Shown here: in pieces, positions 53,357 to 64,000 of the stretch
Layout: each line of letters opens with the position of its first letter
Numbering within the stretch: position 1 is the stretch's first letter
Origin: Epithemia pelagica
Lineage: Eukaryota > Protista > Bacillariophyta
Length of the DNA: 64,000 nt
Reading direction: 5' to 3'
Assembly (NCBI GenBank): GCA_946965045.2
Contig: OX337233.1
Location: 2,666,001-2,730,000 of the forward strand
Position numbers and translations under genes: made by a program
Notes under the pieces: model-generated
Told to the model about the DNA's origin: nothing
The model's database searches: none
Seen by the model: only the letters and a program-made list of their open reading frames with translations

Positions 53357-56300
53357 TCATCCACAAAATGTGCAACAATCACACTCAACAAAGTTCGGGT
53401 TGCCACTGTTAAGACAGTCAGCAGACAAAGCTGTGAGCGGATCGCCCCTTAGATCACAAACTCGTGCCGGCATTGTCCCTCCAAGAAAATTGCTATGGAA
53501 AAGCGCTTCCTCTGGATGAATTTTCGGTTGAAGATAGACCCATGGTGTTAGCTTCGCTGTACGACTGAAAGTAGAAACAGGAACAAAGTAAGCACTTACG
53601 GAGATTTGACAGTTGCCCAACCTCGTCGGGGATGGATCCACGAAGTGTATTTGATTGCAAGTGAAGGATTTCTAGATTTTCCAGAGCAGCGATTCTTGTA
53701 CTGATCTGGAAATCAAAGAAGTTGGTATCGAGCTCAAGAATTCTTAGACCATTGAGATCATAAAGCGATAAGGGAATATCACCTGTTAGGAGCTGGAAAC
53801 TAAGAGATAGCTCTTCGAGCCTAGAAAGTTCAGTAAAAACGTCAGGAATCTTTCCTTGGATGGCTCCATCTTCAAGAACCAGTACTCTCAGCTCAGGAAA
53901 TTCTCTCAGCTCTGTGTTGATAGCACCAGTCATTCCAATCCTCTCTGTAGATGTAAAATTAGACAAAGAAACGTGAGGATGATGCGATCCCCAAAACGAA
54001 GTTTGAGCAAACATTGTCTTACCTAAGGATATCTGAACAACTTCATCGTATTCTCGACCAAAGTCAAAGCAAACTGCCCCGCCCCATTCACACTCAAGGC
54101 TCGGTGTCAACCAGGCATCTGATCCGGTTCCTGGAATGATTTCAATATCGCATTTTGCATTCGCGTCAGCAATCGCCACGGGGTCTGAAAAATCTGAAGG
54201 GGCGCTACATTTTGTCCATCTGTCTCCTCGTAAACTGTAGTACATAGTCGCAAGGGAGTAGCGCTGGATCAAGTTAGGATCGAATGGACAAAGATATCTA
54301 GTGTCCTCTTCAATAAGCCATCGTGCTGCTTGACCTTGGGGAGTTGTTTCATCCTGTATATCTTGCAAGGATGAAGCTTGGGTCAAGAAAAGCAGTATTT
54401 GAGAACGTCTTTGAGATTCGCTCAAGTTGCATCTTGGAGTGGGCGCCGCGGATGGCTCTACTGGTGGTTGTCCTGGTGTCGGATTGTTTGTTGGGTTGTC
54501 TGTTGGGTTGTTTGTTGGGTTCAACGTGGTCGGAGACACTGAGGGGACATTGGAAGGGCTGGGACTGGGGTCATGAGTTGGTGAAACAGATGGAAGGAAC
54601 GACGGTTCGTCAGTAGGAGTTTGTGTCGGTTCAACATTGCTTGGTGGAACTGAAGGTTCACTTGAAGGAATTTGCGACGACGGTGACTGCGATGGATCAG
54701 CTGTCAACACTGGTGACGGGGAGCTGTTGTCTGTGGGAGAGACAGAAGGATTTTGTGAAGACGAAGGTTCTGTCCCACTGGATGGACCCTGAGTTGGGAG
54801 ATGTGACGGAGCTGTGGAAGGAAGATGTGACGGAGCTGTGGAAGGAAGTGTAGTCGGTTCAGACGATGGATTTTCTGATGGCTCGGTGGAAGGCAATAGA
54901 GAAGGAGTCGTTGTCGGACCACTGGAAGGCATTTCAGTAGGCACTGAACTTGGATTTGAAGAAGGATCAACAGAAGGTTGAGTAGAAGGAGCTGCTGTTG
55001 GGTTAGTTGATGGCATGTCTGACGGTGGAATCGATGGTAGTGCAGGAGGGATAATTGATGGTAAGTGAGAGGGAGTGTCCGAAGGAGTTTCCGCAAGAGA
55101 TGGACCATGTGTCGGTGCCTGGCTTGATGGGATGGAGATTGACGGTTCACTGGATGGCTGAGATGTGGGTGCGCTGCTAGAATCGAAGGGACTGGAAGAA
55201 GGGTAATCTGACGGCCTAATGGATGGAATACCAGTTGGGTCAGGAGATGGGAAATTGGTGGAGTTGACCATTGGTTGGATTGAAGGGACGGCTGTAGGAT
55301 GCTCACTAGGCTCTGTGGATGGATGCGGAGATGGCTGGATTGGCTGCCCGGACGGTAACACTGAGGGGAAACTTGACGGATTCGGTGTCGAATCAGCCGA
55401 AGGTGTGACCGTGGGGTTCCCATTTGGGGAAACTGTTGGTCTCAACGACGGAAGTGAACTTGGAAATTCTGTAGGGAAAGTGGACGGCTCTCTCGATGGA
55501 ATGACTGTCGGCTGATCTGAGGGACCAAGTGATGGTTCGGTGGTGGGCTCATCAGATGTTGGTTCCATAGTGGGTGTGGTACTTGGAGACAAAGAAGGTA
55601 ACATTGATGGCTTGGGCGAAGGTTCAATTGTCGGTTGGCCAGATGGATCTCGCGATGGACCACTCGATGGCATTGCCGACGGCCTCAATGTCGGATCTGT
55701 CGATGGCAAAACAGATGGTGTTCCGGAAGGACTTGAACTGGGAGAGGTCGTTGGATCCTCCGATGGCTGTCTAGTCGGTTCTGATGTTGGTATTTCTGAC
55801 GGCATGCTTGTTGGAAAAGCCGATGGAAGCTCTGTCGGAAAACTCGAAGGAATCTCTGATGGAGTCATGCTTGGTATATTCGAAGGGCGAGAAGATGGAT
55901 TTTCCGACGGTAAAGACGAATGAGTGATTGACGGCTGCTCAGACGGCAGTCCCGACGGAGAGATTGACGGCTGTTCAGACGGCAATGACGAAGGATTCTC
56001 AGAGGGCAATGATGAAGGGATTTCAGAAGGTTCTTCAGATGGTGTCGATGAGGGAGTTTTCGATGGATGATATGACGGTGTCGATGAGGGATTGCTCGAA
56101 GGATTCTCAGATGGTGTCGATGAGGGATTGCTCGAAGGATTCTCAGATGGCTCCGATGAGGGATTGCTCGAAGGATTCTCAGATGGCTCCGATGATGGGC
56201 TGCTCGAGGGCGACAAGCTAGGACTGCAGGATGGAAGACTTGATGGAAGGTCTGTTGGAGTGGTGGATGGTGACTCGCTCGGCGTTTCCGACGGCTCAGA

Positions 56301-57020
56301 CGATGGTCTCATACTTGGTTGGTGGCTTGGGTTATGCGAAGGTTCGATAGTCGGGTTATCCGATGGAGTTGACGTGGGAGTTCCGCTCGGAGAGTTGCTG
56401 GGCAATGATGTTGGTACCTCACTCATACTCAATGCATTTCTAGCCCATGGATGCGTGATCATGTAATCTTTAATATCAAAGCCCCTAAGAACTCTCTCCC
56501 AGAATTCGGGATCATCTTGTATCACTTCTTCTTGCTTTTCTTCCAATTGACGAGAAACTTGCGCACCACAGGGACCATCCGCTCGTTCATTCGTCGGTTT
56601 CGTCGAAGGCTGCTCTGTCGGTTCCTGTGAAGGCTCTTTTGTGGGTGTCGTGGAAGGGCTTTCAGTAGCAATAGTTTGTGTCAACGGGTCTTTGGATTCT
56701 TCTTTGTTTTGATTGGATTTCGCGTCGGCAATAACATCTTTAATGCTTCCCCGTCCATGGTGATGTGCTTGAGCCACAATATCTTCGAATCCCAAACCTA
56801 TGGTTCTGTCAGTGCTTGTTCTTCGACCGCCTGATAATGTTGAAGCTCTCTCAAGTTTCCGTATTCTATTTTCACTGCTCTCCTCTGTAGATTGGTTTAT
56901 CTTGGAAGCATGAACTCCCCTCACAGAGACAAGGCTTGGAGTTGTTGTCGCAGCCAATGCAACTAAAAGTAAAGTTGCTGCTGCTACCTTTCTTCTATAT
57001 ATTGTTCTCTTTGACCGCAT
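53357..57020 (-). CDS. Secreted/surface LRR protein with a very long Pro/Ser/Thr stalk; introns 54022-53945 (in-frame) and 53599-53512
   Basis: Signal peptide, more than 700 aa of PSxx repeats, the conserved block TPQGQAARWLIEED...IQRYSLATMYY, LRRs, and a terminal ADC...ECDCCTFC. It has the same architecture as 46025-48398. Confidence 0.88.
56038..56210. repeat. Coding 36-bp tandem repeat (~5 copies; PSSNPSSE/TPSEN)
   Basis: Units start at 56038, 56074, 56110, 56146 and 56182, with consensus GATGGTGTCGATGAGGGATTGCTCGAAGGATTCTCA. Confidence 0.9.
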
Positions 57021-58013
57021 GGGACTTCTTGACAACACTCTGTGAGCTTATAGCTTCGTTTCACAAATATAGATGAGTTCCGTCTCGGTGGCATCGGATC
57101 TCATTCTTTCAGCCGGAGATGAAACCATTGGCACCGATTTGTGCATGTCAGGTGGATGCACAAGATGCGTTGGTTTGTCGTCCGACGCACCTTGGCGATA
57201 TCCACATTTAAGTAATCTTCTGACAACGGATGATGTGAAGGTTATTTAAGATCACAGACCTAATTCATATGCGTGAGTGTAAATATCGAATGTCACACTA
57301 TCCCAATTTCACCTTCGGATATGTCCGTTGAATGATTCCTGCTTTTCCATACGCGAGGCGGGCCATCCTTTAGCACACAATGGAAAAATTTGTTGCACAT
57401 CCGTCCATGCTTATGAAGAATACCTACATCTATTCTTCCTCTCACCCTATTCGCTCGTCGTATCCAGGGAGACGCCATTATGGATCGATTTCCGTAGTGG
57501 ACGAGGGTATTGGCGAAACGAAATCTGTGTAGTCTTTGAAATAACTTATCTGAACAGAGCTGAAGCTCGGACCAATCCAATATTTCCCATGACCAAGCGT
57601 AACCTACGTTTCCCTTGGATCCATGGTCATTTCATTGCAAGCGAGCTACGGGCTGATATTATTTTCCATCTTCTCGTAAAGAGAGATGCATACTTTTTTA
57701 TGTGCTCTAAGGTATAAGTACTCCTTACTCCACTAAGGTTATCAGGATGCTAAGCTTACCGGTAGCTTAACATGACACGGACGACGGTCGGACGATATGA
57801 ATAGTCCAAGATCTTTTTAGCCTAAAACGAGACGTCGACTCTTTACAGAAAGGCAAGGAAGAGAAAAGATACAAGATACAACGAGGCCTTGCTCCAACAG
57901 GCTTTTGAATGAGCTGCTGGCCTTGGATGGAGAGCCTTGCGAAAAAATGGCATCTCTCATTATTTGAACATTCCGTGTGTTTCGAAACACGTTTACTTTG
58001 CTAAAGGCCTATC

Positions 58014-59414
58014 ATGTCGAATGACCACACTGAATCTGCTCCTGCCTCAACGGTAGATCCTACAAAAGCGACGACGGAAACTACCATGGAAGATGTCAAA
58101 ACCGACGACCCTGCCAATGACGATCGCGTTCCCGTGACGATTCTTTCGGGGTTCCTTGGATCGGGCAAGACGACTCTACTTCGATACATTTTGGAATCCC
58201 ACGAGCACAAACAAAAGGTTGCTGTGATTGTCAATGACATGGCCAGTCTCAACATTGACGCGTCGGTCGTCGGTGGGGACTACGATTCCATCGTACAAGC
58301 CAAAAAGGAAATTGTTTCTCTTTCCAACGGGTGCATCTGTTGCGCGCTTCGCGGTGACTTGATTCGAGAAATCAATCGAATTCGAAACCTGGGGAAATAC
58401 GACTACGTTTTGATTGAATCCACGGGCGTGGCGGAACCTCAACAAGTGGCCGAAAGTTTCTGCCTCGACCCTGCGACACAACAGCTCGCCGAAGACCCAT
58501 CTCAAATGCTTTGGACAGTTGCGCGTCTTGACACGTGTGTGACTGTATTGGATGCCAAGGAATTTCCACGTCTCATCAAGTCCGTCGGTCGGTTCAAGGA
58601 TCTGTTTACTGATGGTTTGGAAGAAAACGATCCGTCGGGAGAAGGCAAGAAAAGTATTGCCAATCTTCTCATTGAACAGGTCGAGTTTGCGAATGTGGTC
58701 TTAGTCAACAAGGTTGATTTGGTTTCGGACGAAGAACGCGAAAGTGTCATTCACGTTGTCAAGACGTTGAATCCCAAAGCCAAGATTTTATCAACGTCCT
58801 ACAGCAAACTTGATCTCAAGGAAGTACTCAACAGCTTTCGATTTTCCATGGATGAGGCGCGACTGAGCGTGGGATGGCTCGATTCGCTCAAGCGGGCAAG
58901 GGACGAAGAAGTCAAGACCGAGACAGAGGAATACGGTATCTCGTCGTTTGTGTACAAGGCACGAAAGCCGTTTCATCCAGCTCGCTTGTCTGCTTGGATT
59001 CGTCGCATCTTTCACTTTTGTCATGAATGGCAAGAATTAAACGATGAAGAGGCCAAAGAAGTGGACGATACAACGCAATTAGCCACGATGGAAGAAGAGT
59101 TTGGCCAAATCCTTCGCTCGAAAGGTATCTGTTGGATCGCAGGATGGGACTCCATGCAAGTATCATGGTCCAATAGCGGACGCATCCTTCAAATATCTCC
59201 CATGATGCCCTGGTTTGCCGAAATCCCTAAAGATCAATGGGAGAAGCGCACGACTGAAGAAGTTGAAGAAATGCGAAAGGACTTTGAAGAACCTCATGGG
59301 GATCGACGTCAAGCAATTGTTTTTATTGGCATCAATCTGAATCACGAAGCCTTGATTGCATCCCTGGACAAGGTTCTTCTGACCGACGATGAGATGAAAC
59401 AACACTGTAGTTAG
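58014..59414 (+). CDS. COG0523/CobW-family G3E GTPase metallochaperone
   Basis: GFLGSGKTT, IVND, SNGCICC (CxCC), IESTG, NKVD, and a CobW_C domain (RKPFHP..RSKG...GDRRQAIVFIG). Confidence 0.93.
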   Translation: MSNDHTESAPASTVDPTKATTETTMEDVKTDDPANDDRVPVTILSGFLGSGKTTLLRYILESHEHKQKVAVIVNDMASLNIDASVVGGDYDSIVQAKKEIVSLSNGCICCALRGDLIREINRIRNLGKYDYVLIESTGVAEPQQVAESFCLDPATQQLAEDPSQMLWTVARLDTCVTVLDAKEFPRLIKSVGRFKDLFTDGLEENDPSGEGKKSIANLLIEQVEFANVVLVNKVDLVSDEERESVIHVVKTLNPKAKILSTSYSKLDLKEVLNSFRFSMDEARLSVGWLDSLKRARDEEVKTETEEYGISSFVYKARKPFHPARLSAWIRRIFHFCHEWQELNDEEAKEVDDTTQLATMEEEFGQILRSKGICWIAGWDSMQVSWSNSGRILQISPMMPWFAEIPKDQWEKRTTEEVEEMRKDFEEPHGDRRQAIVFIGINLNHEALIASLDKVLLTDDEMKQHCS

Positions 59415-60106
59415 TTCGGTGGTATGGCTTCGAGGGATTATGCATACTCCTCAGATAAAACCTTTCATACATAAAGATTTTTCCTTTCTTGTGTCTTTCA
59501 CCCATGTACTTTTTCGTTTCTTGGAGCAATCCTCCGTTTCACGTCCGAGCATGCACTTGCTCCTCGTCGAGCTACGAAACGGTTTGGTAATCCGAAGTGA
59601 AACCCACACTCAATGCCACTTGGCACTTGGTATGTGATATACGTCCAATGTTCCGACCCTGGCTAAAACAGTTTCGACTTTGGCGTTCCTTTTCTGGACA
59701 CTTCTCTTGACTTTCTTATTGATACTCGTACTCGTATACTCCTAGAAAAGCAATCGGCAGCTCTGAGGTAGTTACTCCTAGGTAGCTAGTTCATACGCGT
59801 CACGGATGCATTCCGCGACCGCAACTGCGCCACGTCACCCAGAGGAACAAGAGGCCTTTTCGAGAGACCCCGGGGGGTGGGCCTGTGGGCCTACCTTATC
59901 TCATGTGTCCATTCACGGATAGTTTTATGATTTTTCCCCATGAATATGGATAATTTCCGAGTAAATCGTAAATTTACTTTCTATTTTAGCGAGTATTGCA
60001 GCGATAGAATCTTTCGTGGCACGACAGCCAACCAAATCCTTTCGTTGTCCCATTTACAAGAAGATCATCAGTCTCTCAACGATCGGTGTAGAGGAGTTGT
60101 CCCATC

Positions 60107-62008
60107 ATGTCGAACGACGATGCCGATGACGACCGCGTCCCGGTGACAATCCTTTCGGGGTTCTTGGGCGCCGGAAAGACGACCCTGCTTCGATACATTT
60201 TAGAGTCTCATGAGCACAAGCAAAAGGTTGCTGTGATTGTAAATGACATGGCCAGTCTCAACATTGACGCTGCCGTTGTGGGTGGAGATTTCGGATCCAT
60301 TGTTCAAGCCAAGAAAGAGGTCGTTTCGCTTTCCAACGGTTGTATCTGTTGTGCCCTTCGTGGAGACTTGATCCGAGAAATCAACCGCATCCGAAAACTT
60401 GGTAGCTACGACTACATTTTGATCGAATCGACCGGTGTAGCGGAACCCCAACAGGTGGCGGAAAGTTTCTGTGCAGATCCTGAAACGCAAGATCTGGCAG
60501 AAGACCCGTCTCAGATGCTTTGGAATGTTGCACGCCTTGACACATGTGTGACCGTGTTGGATGCCAAAGAATTTCCGCGTCTCATCAAATCCGTCGATCG
60601 ATTCAAAGACCTATTCACGGACGGATTGGAGGAGAATGATCCTGACGGTGAAGGTGAGAAAAACATTGCAGACTTACTCATTGAACAGGTTGAGTTTGCC
60701 AATGTCATCCTTGTGAACAAGGTAGATTTGGTGTCTGAAGAAGAACGTGAACAACTAGTCCGGGTAGTTTCCACGTTGAACCCGAAAGCCAAGATTTTGT
60801 GCACGTCCTACAGCAAGGTCGACCTTAAGGAGATTCTTAACAGCCACTTATTTTCGATGGAGGAGGCACAAATGAGCGCTGGGTGGCTTGATTCCTTGAA
60901 AGAGTCAAAACATGGGGAAATCAAGACAGAGACGGACGAATACAACATCTCATCGTTCGTTTATCGAGCACGTAAACCATTCCATCCTACACGCTTGTCT
61001 GCTTGGATACGACGAATCTTTCACTTTTCGCAGGAATGGAACGAAAATGACGTGAAGGACGACTCGGAACAACTTGCGTCCATGGAATCAAACTTTGGCC
61101 AAATTCTTCGCTCCAAAGGTTTTTGCTGGATTGCCGGACGAGACAACATGCAGGCATCGTGGTCAAACAGTGGACGTCTTGTCCTCATTTCTCCCATGAT
61201 GCCTTGGTGTGCCGTTACTCCCGAGAAGGAATGGGTTGCCGAAACACCCGAAGAAGTTGAAGAAATGCGCAAAAACTTTGAAGGACCATACGACGATCGC
61301 CGCCAGGCAATTGTCTTCATTGGAATTCAGTTGAAGAAAGAAGCTCTGATTTCGTCCCTGAATGAGTGCTTGCTTACTGACGCCGAATTGACAAACCACT
61401 CATTAACTGCCAACTATCGATACCATGATACTCTTCCTGCTTGGTTAAAAACTTATGAAGAACCAGGCGAAACCTTTTGTCCAATATTGCAGGTTGATCA
61501 GAGACACAGGTTTGAGGTTGCACCAGGTCTTTTATTGCGCATAACCAACCTTGCCCTCGACATTCCTATTGAAATGGAGACTGATCCAACAGATTACAAG
61601 ATATGTGCGAAAATATGGTTGGACCAAGGCGAAGGATCGGACAAGGAGTCGCGCTTGTTGGCAACTCTACGCTCTGGATTCTCTGAGCAATATTCTCTTG
61701 CTGTTGAGGTGGCTTCGAAAGTTGTCGAACATGAGGAAGGAGGCGATGAGGAAGAAGAGGAGCACGAGCATGATCACGTGCATGAAGCGGAAAGCACAGT
61801 GCACTGGCTACGAATGGAGCTGATCACTAGGGCGACTGGTAAACGTAGTCATACAGGGGAGACGTTGGCACCAGACTGTGAGGGAGTGCGGGTGCACGCT
61901 TTAGGATCAATCATGCTGCATCCTTCGCGTGAAACGGAAGGAGAAGAAGACAACGAGGATGAAGAAAATGGAGAAGCGTGTGCATTACACGGTCACAACC
62001 ACAAGTAG
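60107..62008 (+). CDS. COG0523/CobW-family GTPase with a C-terminal nucleoplasmin-like domain and His/acidic tracts
   Basis: Has the same GTPase and CobW_C motifs as 58014-59414, plus a ~200-aa extension (LLLRITNLAL...LLATLRSGFSEQYSL...VRVHALG, then an acidic tail and HGHNHK). Confidence 0.9.
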   Translation: MSNDDADDDRVPVTILSGFLGAGKTTLLRYILESHEHKQKVAVIVNDMASLNIDAAVVGGDFGSIVQAKKEVVSLSNGCICCALRGDLIREINRIRKLGSYDYILIESTGVAEPQQVAESFCADPETQDLAEDPSQMLWNVARLDTCVTVLDAKEFPRLIKSVDRFKDLFTDGLEENDPDGEGEKNIADLLIEQVEFANVILVNKVDLVSEEEREQLVRVVSTLNPKAKILCTSYSKVDLKEILNSHLFSMEEAQMSAGWLDSLKESKHGEIKTETDEYNISSFVYRARKPFHPTRLSAWIRRIFHFSQEWNENDVKDDSEQLASMESNFGQILRSKGFCWIAGRDNMQASWSNSGRLVLISPMMPWCAVTPEKEWVAETPEEVEEMRKNFEGPYDDRRQAIVFIGIQLKKEALISSLNECLLTDAELTNHSLTANYRYHDTLPAWLKTYEEPGETFCPILQVDQRHRFEVAPGLLLRITNLALDIPIEMETDPTDYKICAKIWLDQGEGSDKESRLLATLRSGFSEQYSLAVEVASKVVEHEEGGDEEEEEHEHDHVHEAESTVHWLRMELITRATGKRSHTGETLAPDCEGVRVHALGSIMLHPSRETEGEEDNEDEENGEACALHGHNHK

Positions 62009-62288
62009 GACTCTTCAACCCCTAAGGCCATCCTCTATGGTGCGAGTATCGAACCTACATTTTAATCATTGAGGAATTCTTATCGGCAGTTTTATATCTT
62101 ATGGAGTAGGGAGGTTGACTTTGTTATCGCTTTAACAAACCTTCATGAGAAAGCTCCATGGTGGTTGGGATTACGGATTCCGAAAACGCGATTCTTCCGA
62201 TACTTATGTGCGATTGCAATGTGCACAAACCACGTCACCGGGCCACTTTTGGTTTGGGGTTTCCATTCTTAGATTTAGCCTGATCACC

Positions 62289-62867
62289 ATGATGATTCGA
62301 TCCAACTTGTTTCTAATCTTTTCTTCTCTGAGTTACGTGTGCTCCCTCAATGTCCATCCCCCCGTGGCGCGCAGAGACGCCGTAAAAAGCATCACCCAAA
62401 TGGTATCTGCTTCTCTTGGGTCCTTTGCCATGATGCCTTCCTTGGCGGCCAGGGCATCCGAGAACGACGACCGAATTTCCGATACCGAGATCAAAGAAAC
62501 GGTAGAGAAAGACATCTTGGAGCGGCAGTTCTTGGTGACTGGGAACTTGACGCCTCGGGTCTATCGTCCCACAGCAACCTTTACGGACGAAATTGATACC
62601 TACCAAATGGATCAATGGATGAAAGGTACACAAAAGTTATTTGTGGGTGAAAAATCAGAGATACGGTTGGTTGGAGACGTCATGGTATCACCTGAGAAGG
62701 TAGAATTCCGTTTCGACGAAGATCTCATGTTCCGAATCCCTTTTCGTCCGACTGTCTCTCTGACCGGCAAAGTTGTACTTGCGCGAGACGAAGCCGGGTA
62801 CATCACATCGTACCAAGAGTTTTGGGATCAAGATGTTGTTTCTGTTCTCAAGACGGCCAAGTTCTGA
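62289..62867 (+). CDS. Hypothetical NTF2/SnoaL-like (DUF2358-like) plastid-lumen protein
   Basis: Signal peptide, Tat-like ARRDAV...ARA, then FLVTGNLTPRVY...FTDEI...ITSYQEFWD. Confidence 0.7.
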   Translation: MMIRSNLFLIFSSLSYVCSLNVHPPVARRDAVKSITQMVSASLGSFAMMPSLAARASENDDRISDTEIKETVEKDILERQFLVTGNLTPRVYRPTATFTDEIDTYQMDQWMKGTQKLFVGEKSEIRLVGDVMVSPEKVEFRFDEDLMFRIPFRPTVSLTGKVVLARDEAGYITSYQEFWDQDVVSVLKTAKF

Positions 62868-63107
62868 ACGCAGTGTCTTATTTCAGTTACCTGTTGCCTC
62901 TATTAATCGTACTGCTCGTTAAAATGTTTGTGATCTTGGACCACAGTGAGTCTTGAGATCGTTCGGCTATCAGTAACTCGATACATCAGTTTAAAGAAGC
63001 ACTACTTTGCTTTTTCTTTCAGACGCTTATCAACCTTAAATACAAGCGCTACTCCCGACAAAGAACCCCATCCATTGCATCAATTGACCAGAGACATCTT
63101 GAACCAT

Positions 63108-64000
63108 TTAGTCTCCTCCACGTCTAGTGAACCTTCTTAGGAATCGTCGAAGCCCTCGTTTTCTCTCAGGGTGATCGTCGTCACTGTCACCGTCTTTGCC
63201 GTCTCCTGGCTTTTTGAACCCGCGTGTAATGGCAATGCGTGCCTCTTCCAGAGTGGCATCGGGTCCGAGTGGACTCTGCGTGTTCTTTCGTCTATCCTTG
63301 TAAAAGTTTGGATCCTTGGTTCGTTCCAAGTAATCATCTCCCTCTACTTCAGCTAGAATATCAATAGGAAGCTCTGAATCAAAATCACATGCAAGGACAG
63401 TGATTGAAATCTCTTCTTCCATGGCTGGATCAACCAAAGCACCAAAGATGATGTTGGCATTGTCATCCGCGTTCTCGTAAATAACCTCACTAGCTTCGTT
63501 GATTTCTTGAAGTCCCATATCTTCTCCACCGACAATGTTAAAGACAATGCGTTTTGCCCTTTGAATTGGGAAGTCCAATAATGGACTCGATATAGCCGCA
63601 ACAGCAGCATCCGATGCGCGATTCTTGCCAATTCCGGTACCAACACCCATGAGAGCTGTTCCAGCATCTTTCATGACAGCTCGAACATCGGCAAAATCTA
63701 CATTCACAAGACCTGCTTTCAGAATGATTTCTGAAATCCCAATGACACCCTGCCTCAAAATATCATCGGCCACAAGAAAGGCATCCGTCACGGGTGTATT
63801 GTCTGGAACGATCCGTAACAATTTATCGTTGGACACAACAATCAAAGTGTCCACATGTCTGCGCAATTCCTCAATAGCTGCTTCAGCCTGTCTCATTCGA
63901 TTCCTTCCTTCAAAGGCAAAGGGTTTGGTAACAACACCTACTGTCAAACACCCACAATCGTTCTTGGCAATTTCGGCCACTACCGGTGCCGCACCGGACC
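63108..64000 (-). CDS. ftsZ: FtsZ (probably organellar division protein), 5' part beyond the window edge
   Basis: [57 protein letters not shown]. Confidence 0.96.

Follow-up and report, generated by a model that had tools for sequence, protein, structure and literature searches.

Proteins of the COG0523 family are the main candidates for the role of zinc and cobalt chaperone in the cell, but for most of them neither the clients nor the working assemblies are known. They bind Zn(II) or Co(II) at a CxCC site in a nucleotide-dependent manner and pass the metal to client apo-proteins, as in the examples of ZNG1 with MetAP1 and of CobW (PMC9010474, PMC12891040). Diatom members of the family are markers of Zn and Co stress in the ocean (PMC9010474). 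Here we consider one such protein from the diatom Epithemia pelagica. Its gene lies at 60107..62008 in a stretch of 64,000 nucleotides (contig OX337233.1, positions 2,666,001 to 2,730,000 of the forward strand), which we call the window and in whose coordinates all positions are given. Behind the GTPase part, the protein carries a tail of roughly 200 residues. What is this tail, and what could a metal chaperone do with it?

An earlier note, made from the DNA letters, proposed that the tail has the nucleoplasmin-like (NPL) fold of histone chaperones, HD2 deacetylases and nuclear FKBPs, and knew of no described fusion of this fold to a G3E GTPase. The paper that defined the NPL domain gives it three architectures, and in all of them the domain is N-terminal: alone, as in the nucleoplasmins, followed by a C-terminal FKBP isomerase, or followed by a C-terminal zinc finger, as in the HD-tuins (PMC4414354). 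A long acidic region comes after the domain in each case (PMC4414354). The domain is defined by its pentamer, its strand architecture and its hydrophilic pore, and less so by its interfaces (PMC4414354). A COG0523 enzyme with such a domain at its C-terminus falls outside this scheme.

We think it likely that the protein is an intact COG0523 metallochaperone GTPase whose NPL tail assembles it into a ring of chaperones that gathers metal, holds clients, or both. The domain content, the fold and homology of the tail, its conserved features and the spread of the fusion through the family are documented below, followed by the arguments for and against this reading.

Results

An intact COG0523 GTPase in a single reading frame

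The gene is one uninterrupted open reading frame (ORF), and an identical 633-residue protein (P0001) is recorded for the same contig. The cobW and CobW_C domains score far above their Pfam cut-offs (166.3 bits against 20.7, and 65.3 bits against 22). Every motif expected of the GTPase is intact: Walker A (GFLGAGKT, amino acids 18-25), the GCICC metal motif (78-82), ESTG (107) and NKVD (204). Judged by these domains and motifs, the protein belongs to COG0523, the CobW subfamily of the G3E P-loop GTPases. The tail begins after amino acid 433. Table 1 lists the features of the gene together with those of its surroundings.

Table 1. Features of the fusion gene and of its neighborhood (aa, amino acids; coordinates refer to the window)
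Feature	Position	Strand	Basis
Whole gene: COG0523 GTPase, CobW_C and NPL tail, 633 aa, no intron seen	60107..62008	+	ORF list, identical P0001, run X4 contig
cobW G-domain, aa 12-231	60140..60799	+	Pfam PF02492, E 6.7e-49
CobW_C domain, aa 281-422	60947..61372	+	Pfam PF07683, E 4.7e-18
Conserved linker from CobW_C to NPL sandwich: YHDTLPAW at aa 439-446, YxDPLPPW as family consensus	61421..61444	+	62-tail column counts
NPL-like eight-strand beta-sandwich (predicted), aa 454-605	61466..61921	+	AlphaFold model, VIA-align, Foldseek, Pfam NPL on family tails
Variable His/Glu-rich insertion, beta6-beta7 loop, aa 537-564	61715..61798	+	Low-pLDDT coil between model strands 95-103 and 132-141
beta7-beta8 loop with conserved GKR(S/T) patch, aa 575-593	61829..61885	+	Family alignment
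Acidic tract EGEEDNEDEENGE, aa 611-623	61937..61975	+	Motif positions
C-terminal Cys/His motif ACALHGHNHK, aa 624-633	61976..62005	+	Motif positions
Tandem paralog: COG0523 without NPL tail, 466 aa	58014..59414	+	ORF list, Pfam, tree
240-aa ORF directly downstream, no Pfam match, hydrophobic stretch near N-terminus	62145-62867	+	Covered by run X4 contigs
ORF with FtsZ C-terminal domain and end of tubulin/FtsZ GTPase domain	63108-63980	-	
1181-aa ORF, PT disordered repeat region and C-terminal leucine-rich repeats	53493-57038	-	

The tail is predicted to fold like nucleoplasmin

An AlphaFold model built from two sequences gave an all-beta structure of eight strands, with a predicted local distance difference test (pLDDT) score of 59.7. 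With nine sequences the score rose to 71.5; the core blocks stood near 90, and the five models agreed at 70-71.5. We compared both models with 48,161 PDB representatives in an all-against-all structure comparison (VIA-align) that is independent of Foldseek. For the first model, the chains at ranks 1-7 were all nucleoplasmin or NPL (Z 10.4-8.1). For the second, the same held for ranks 1-9 (Z 12.2-9.0): AtHDT1 (Z 12.2, with a root-mean-square deviation of 1.8 A over 94/94 residues), Drosophila NLP (11.2), two entries of NPM1 (10.8 and 10.2), Plasmodium nucleoplasmin (10.7), the NPL domain of FKBP39 (9.9), Npm2 (9.8), AtFKBP53 (9.1) and NPM2-H1.8 (9.0). The first unrelated chain followed at Z 7.5.

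Foldseek, one of the checks that the earlier note had suggested, ranked HDT2, NPM1, HDT1 and FKBP43 highest, each with probability 1.00 and template modeling (TM) scores by target of 0.75-0.79. When the ESM Atlas was searched by shape with the tail model, clusters of NPL-FKBP and NPL-C2H2 proteins were returned. The structural matches begin at model residue 21, which is amino acid 454; the note had placed the start of the domain at 61470, or amino acid 455. According to these models, then, the tail has the eight-strand nucleoplasmin-type beta-sandwich that the note had read from the sequence.

One further match from the ESM Atlas deserves a separate word. The model of 61406-62005 aligned over 124 residues (TM 0.50) with a chlorophyte cluster labeled "methionine aminopeptidase" (555 amino acids, Peptidase_M24). 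Methionine aminopeptidase 1 is the known client of ZNG1/CBWD, the eukaryotic COG0523 protein that metalates it. It could be a chance likeness between beta-sandwiches.

Sequence profiles point to common descent

Is the likeness to NPL one of shape or one of ancestry? We assembled the tails of 62 homologs (alignment A3), the sample to which the family counts below refer, and scanned them singly with Pfam. The NPL profile (PF17800) matched 29 of the 62 at E <= 0.01, with a best value of 1.3e-9, and no other Pfam family matched any tail at that threshold. In one relative, P0010, the score of 30.5 bits exceeds the cut-off of 23.4; two others reached 18.9 and 19.0 bits. The Nucleoplasmin profile (PF03066) found nothing in the window tail (E <= 1) or in any of the 62 tails (E <= 0.01). 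When the window tail was searched by its protein-language-model features, the ten best named matches were all NPL or Nucleoplasmin. Profile and model agree that the tail is a true homolog of the NPL domain and not a mere likeness of shape.

Conserved and variable parts of the tail

The tail opens with a linker whose columns are well kept among the family tails (Y 50/62, D 57/62, L 57/62, P 43/62, W 45/62), and in the model a short extra strand follows at once (tail residues 15-17, amino acids 448-450). Within the sandwich, a set of polar residues is nearly invariant: W504, D506, R522, E527, Q528, R569, E571 and H597 in the numbering of the window protein. The strings singled out by the earlier note all lie where it implied, with LLLRITNLALD at amino acid 475 and VRVHALGSI at 594, and the acidic tract, the His/Glu-rich insertion and the Cys/His end that it described are present as well.

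The loops vary far more. Between beta6 and beta7 the family has an acidic loop of 6-61 residues, which holds four or more His in 8/62 members. In the window protein this loop contains EEEEEHEHDHVHE (amino acids 548-560) and carries 5 His and 13 Asp or Glu in 30 residues; counted together with its relatives from Ditylum and JGI, the range is 5-14 His. The beta7-beta8 loop of many relatives bears a basic cluster of the KKRK type, and where this is absent it is often found in the C-tail instead. The pattern K[KR]x[KR] occurs in 25/62 tails, where shuffling leads one to expect 2.9 (maximum 8 of 500); since the sequences are related, the 25 do not represent independent events. The window protein holds only GKRSH and has no classical basic nuclear localization signal (NLS); neither it nor its closest clade, which has only GKR(S/T)x, contains a K[KR]x[KR] or [KR]3 cluster.

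The acidic region behind the sandwich is short in the window protein, about 28 residues. Among 61 C-tails, 52 consist of Asp and Glu to at least 30%, 45 have at least one Cys or at least three His, and nine have CxxGxC. Two terminal metal-ligand motifs appear on this one scaffold: a double-Cys motif of the CxxGxCP type in raphid pennates such as Pseudo-nitzschia and Seminavis, and AC(x)L followed by His in the window clade.

A common and old stramenopile architecture

How far does the fusion extend? Among the 120 best full-length homologs, BLAST with the window tail detects the tail in about 64, and the fusion is shared by diatoms, a chrysophyte and oomycetes, in at least 60 protein clusters altogether. 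The nearest homologs of the window protein are diatom proteins. The diatom sources are Ditylum, Fistulifera, Pseudo-nitzschia, Seminavis, Cylindrotheca, Amphora, Rhizosolenia, Striatella and Dactyliosolen; the others are the chrysophyte Chlorochromonas and the oomycetes Saprolegnia and Aphanomyces. A word-index search limited to the tail gave a single homolog, a marine protein of 670 residues with a tail 44-50% identical and a much longer His-rich loop; a search of the same kind for stand-alone tail homologs of 110-350 residues gave none. An exhaustive search of 1.84 billion representatives returned 10 matches, seven of them true relatives. The other three, P0005 and P0009 (NHL repeats) and P0011 (FG-GAP), were set aside as repeat-protein noise that Pfam recognizes. 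Its conservation in the 670-residue homolog and in more than 60 others shows the tail to be a domain in its own right and no chance extension of the ORF.

The survey of its distribution, which the earlier note had suggested, shows the fusion to be a common, old stramenopile architecture and not a rare one. Since stored Pfam annotation lists PF17800 beside cobW and CobW_C in 8 of the 120 best homologs, it is already catalogued implicitly. The note's view that the fusion is undescribed does hold for the searchable literature, in which we found no paper combining nucleoplasmin with CobW, none linking nucleoplasmin-like or NPL domains with COG0523 or G3E, and nothing on oomycetes relevant to the fusion. 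As far as we searched, two well-known domains occur here in a combination that is apparently undescribed, though automatic annotation marks some of its members.

The fusion is also continuous at the level of nucleic acid. Some relatives are ORFs from the transcriptomes of the Marine Microbial Eukaryote Transcriptome Sequencing Project (MMETSP) that are marked complete and encode the whole fusion, which makes it the product of one mRNA. In the DNA-like runs X1-X3, which cover everything, there are no joints at the domain junction. A contig of run X4 likewise spans 60101-62087 continuously. The contigs of this run lie only over the gene-sized stretches 57880-59555, 60101-62087 and 62166-63095 and leave the spacer at 59601-59982 bare, so run X4 is probably RNA. 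It differs from the window gene at 13 bases with the frame unchanged, and is probably the transcriptome of another strain or allele.

A tandem paralog without the tail

Upstream lies a second COG0523 gene, 78% identical to the tail-bearing gene over the shared part, which ends where the tail would start. In a tree of the GTPase and CobW_C parts of 111 homologs, whose root is not known, the two window genes are sisters (support of 99 in the Shimodaira-Hasegawa-like approximate likelihood ratio test) and fall within a well-supported clade that comprises 12 diatom proteins with NPL. Because the pair is nested in this clade, the upstream copy must have lost its tail after a local duplication. A tblastn search found no degraded remnant of the tail downstream of the paralog or elsewhere in the window. 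Two older tail-less clades, of 4 and 25 rows, are likewise nested among NPL-bearing branches.

The other neighbors in the window are an alpha/beta hydrolase, a protein with PT and leucine-rich repeats, an unannotated ORF of 240 residues and an FtsZ fragment; no metal-related genes were found among them. The FtsZ fragment probably belongs, as a single exon, to an organelle-division FtsZ gene continuing towards the end of the window.

Discussion

A ring of metal chaperones?

How might an NPL tail serve a metal chaperone? The NPL domains of FKBP39, Fpr4 and HD2 are very stable pentamers (PMC4414354), and for this reason we infer from homology that the tail would assemble the protein into a pentameric ring with the GTPase modules as its arms. 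In such a ring, the task of the acidic tract, the Cys/His terminus and the flexible His/Glu loop would be to collect Zn(II) or Co(II), to hold basic, metal-requiring clients, or to do both. GTP would control the transfer of the metal from the GCICC site, as it does in other members of COG0523. The ring might work in the nucleus or in the cytosol.

Several points weigh against this picture. G3E GTPases usually act as dimers, and a five-fold ring is not obviously suited to them. The tail may well be dispensable for basic COG0523 activity, since the sister paralog at 58014..59414 goes without it. In the window protein, the domain is C-terminal, at odds with the N-terminal position by which NPL proteins were described. 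The Pfam NPL profile gives the window protein itself only 13.1 bits (E 0.16), under the cut-off. When the PDB was searched by sequence with the tail alone (phmmer), with a 9-sequence profile and with a 62-sequence profile, no NPL chain came up; the last of these produced only noise (PLC-gamma, E ~1). These empty results fit the structural alignments, in which solved NPL chains share 9-21% identity with the tail, and because of them the case for homology is made from the Pfam profile and the fold together.

The pore adds to these difficulties. NPL pores are lined by His-x-Ser (Arg-x-Thr in fungi) on beta3, an Asp on beta5/6 and a Tyr or His on beta8 (PMC4414354). The pore-like residues of the window protein, identified by motif resemblance, are R478-I-T480 in the strand LLLRITNLAL and H597 on the last strand. 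The matching columns in the family, assigned in the same way, hold T in 25, R in 6, N in 6 and H in 4 of 62; then S in 29 and T in 10; then H in 57. The apparent pore-His column is mostly Thr, and Arg in the window protein, while the canonical Asp is not evident in the 62-tail columns, as judged by motif resemblance and not by a residue-level structural alignment. With the canonical His and Asp seemingly not conserved, pore chemistry and perhaps assembly may differ. Because of its position, and because its pore residues can be compared by motif only, we file the tail as an NPL-family domain in a new context and not as that of a typical NPL protein.

Other readings of the tail

Could the protein be a nuclear or nucleolar factor, the reading that the earlier note put forward? 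Its NPL ring and acidic tract might bind histones, ribosomal or other basic nuclear proteins in the manner of nucleoplasmin, NPM1 and Fpr4, with the GTPase metalating nuclear clients: zinc-finger regulators, RNA polymerase subunits or zinc-ribbon ribosomal proteins. Every characterized NPL protein belongs to chromatin or to the nucleolus (PMC4414354), and there is a nuclear precedent among COG0523 proteins, Chlamydomonas CBP1/ZNG3, which binds the zinc-finger regulator CCM1/CIA5 (PMC12891040, PMC13368412). Together with the NLS-like clusters in the beta7-beta8 loops or C-tails of the family, these relatives favor a putative nuclear localization for the window protein. Acidic tracts that are nearly universal in the family, and an N-terminus without any signal- or transit-peptide-like sequence, fit as well. 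Against this, the window protein and its closest clade lack the basic cluster, which speaks against assuming a nuclear location, and the NLS counts come from related sequences. Moreover, the COG0523 protein ZCRP-A of Phaeodactylum, which may lie outside the fusion family, was seen near the endoplasmic reticulum (ER) and not in the nucleus (PMC9010474). We hold the nuclear reading as possible, and tentatively. More doubtful still is its boldest form, in which five GTPases on an NPL hub make up a zinc-chaperone ring in the nucleus or nucleolus that metalates zinc-requiring ribosomal proteins, RNA polymerases or zinc-finger regulators of stramenopiles.

Alternatively, the tail might serve to store or buffer metal. 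In that case its NPL pore, His/Glu loop and Cys/His terminus would mainly add metal-binding capacity and feed the GCICC site with no client recognition, like the His-rich tails of HypB, UreE and SlyD. The NPL domain of FKBP39 does bind Cu, Co, Zn, Cd and Mg near its pore, albeit weakly and promiscuously (PMC4414354), and His-rich stretches are typical of G3E chaperones, with about 40% of COG0523 proteins having them, usually near the C-terminus (PMC2770081). The His count of the window loop and its Ditylum and JGI counterparts, and the Cys or His ligands of most C-tails, agree with such a role. It is harder to reconcile with the family as a whole: the His-rich loop occurs in only 8/62 members and the sandwich in all, so that what is conserved is the fold with its own polar residues and not the metal-rich inserts. 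We therefore consider a mere store unlikely. Convergence, which would make the tail a generic jelly-roll spacer without NPL-type assembly or function, could appeal to the low identity to solved NPL chains, to the empty PDB searches and to the ease with which beta-sandwiches reach Z 7 to 8 with unrelated folds. It is very improbable given that a gap of 1.5 to 4.7 Z units separates the NPL matches from the first unrelated chain below them, that the best of them aligns over 94/94 residues at 1.8 A, and that Pfam finds NPL, once above the gathering score, and no other family in the tails. For a merger of two adjoining genes, by mis-assembly or a read-through ORF, we found no point in favor. We reject it as practically negligible: the ORF is continuous, the same architecture recurs in more than 60 homologs of independent genomic and transcriptomic origin, some of them transcripts marked complete, and runs X1-X4 cross the junction without a joint.

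Implications

We return to the chaperone ring as the likeliest account. A family-wide NPL fusion suggests hypotheses about the stoichiometry (a chaperone ring), the compartment and the client class (basic nuclear or ribosomal proteins) of a stramenopile subfamily of COG0523. It also takes the NPL domain beyond its known range, to the C-terminus and into the company of an enzyme partner. The tail-less tandem sister provides a natural pair of genes with and without the tail. Were the ring of five chaperones to prove nuclear, ribosome and chromatin biogenesis would be tied directly to the cell's supply of Zn and Co. Such a ring would be without precedent both as a pentameric G3E metallochaperone and as an enzyme-bearing, C-terminal use of the nucleoplasmin fold, and it would concern the oomycete pathogens as well as the diatoms, to which the ocean owes much of its primary production.

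Comparison with known systems

With the NPL proteins of PF17800 (Drosophila FKBP39, yeast Fpr3/Fpr4, plant HDT1-4 and AtFKBP43/53), the window protein shares the predicted eight-strand sandwich and an acidic tract after the domain. Long loop insertions are tolerated in both, as the insert of 50 residues in Fpr4 illustrates (PMC4414354), and R478-I-T480 resembles the fungal motif Arg-x-Thr that replaces His-x-Ser. The differences are equally plain. Its partner is a G3E GTPase instead of an FKBP isomerase or a C2H2 finger, and its domain comes last. Its insertion falls between beta6 and beta7, theirs between beta4 and beta5; and, by motif resemblance, the fusion family seems not to keep the canonical His/Asp pair of the pore. 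The Nucleoplasmin/nucleophosmin core proteins of PF03066 (Xenopus nucleoplasmin, NPM1, Npm2, Drosophila NLP) have the same fold and acidic tracts, but the tails have no Pfam Nucleoplasmin match and the fusion family is nearer to the NPL branch.

On the side of the GTPase, ZNG1/CBWD and the bacterial proteins ZigA, YjiA, YeiR and CobW have the same core, CxCC site and CobW_C domain, without NPL or any known ring-forming module. His-rich stretches near the C-terminus are common in COG0523 proteins (PMC2770081). Diatom ZCRP-A, a COG0523 protein induced by scarcity of Zn or Co, also has the CxCC motif and supplies an ecological setting, the limitation of Zn and Co; it is likened to the window protein by description and not as an ortholog, and the paper that localizes it near the ER does not mention an NPL domain (PMC9010474).

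The closest parallel in design is Chlamydomonas CBP1/ZNG3, an algal COG0523 GTPase of cobW and CobW_C domains with an extra C-terminal module for protein interaction (PMC12891040, PMC13368412). Its add-on is a WW domain and not an oligomerizing one, and it is confined to the Chlorophyceae and Trebouxiophyceae, where our fusion family belongs to the stramenopiles. The principle of the add-on thus has a precedent, dating from 2026, in this CobW-WW protein. Because the NPL fusion parallels a nuclear green-algal protein in this way, the comparison suggests that lineage-specific C-terminal add-ons aim eukaryotic COG0523 proteins at their clients.

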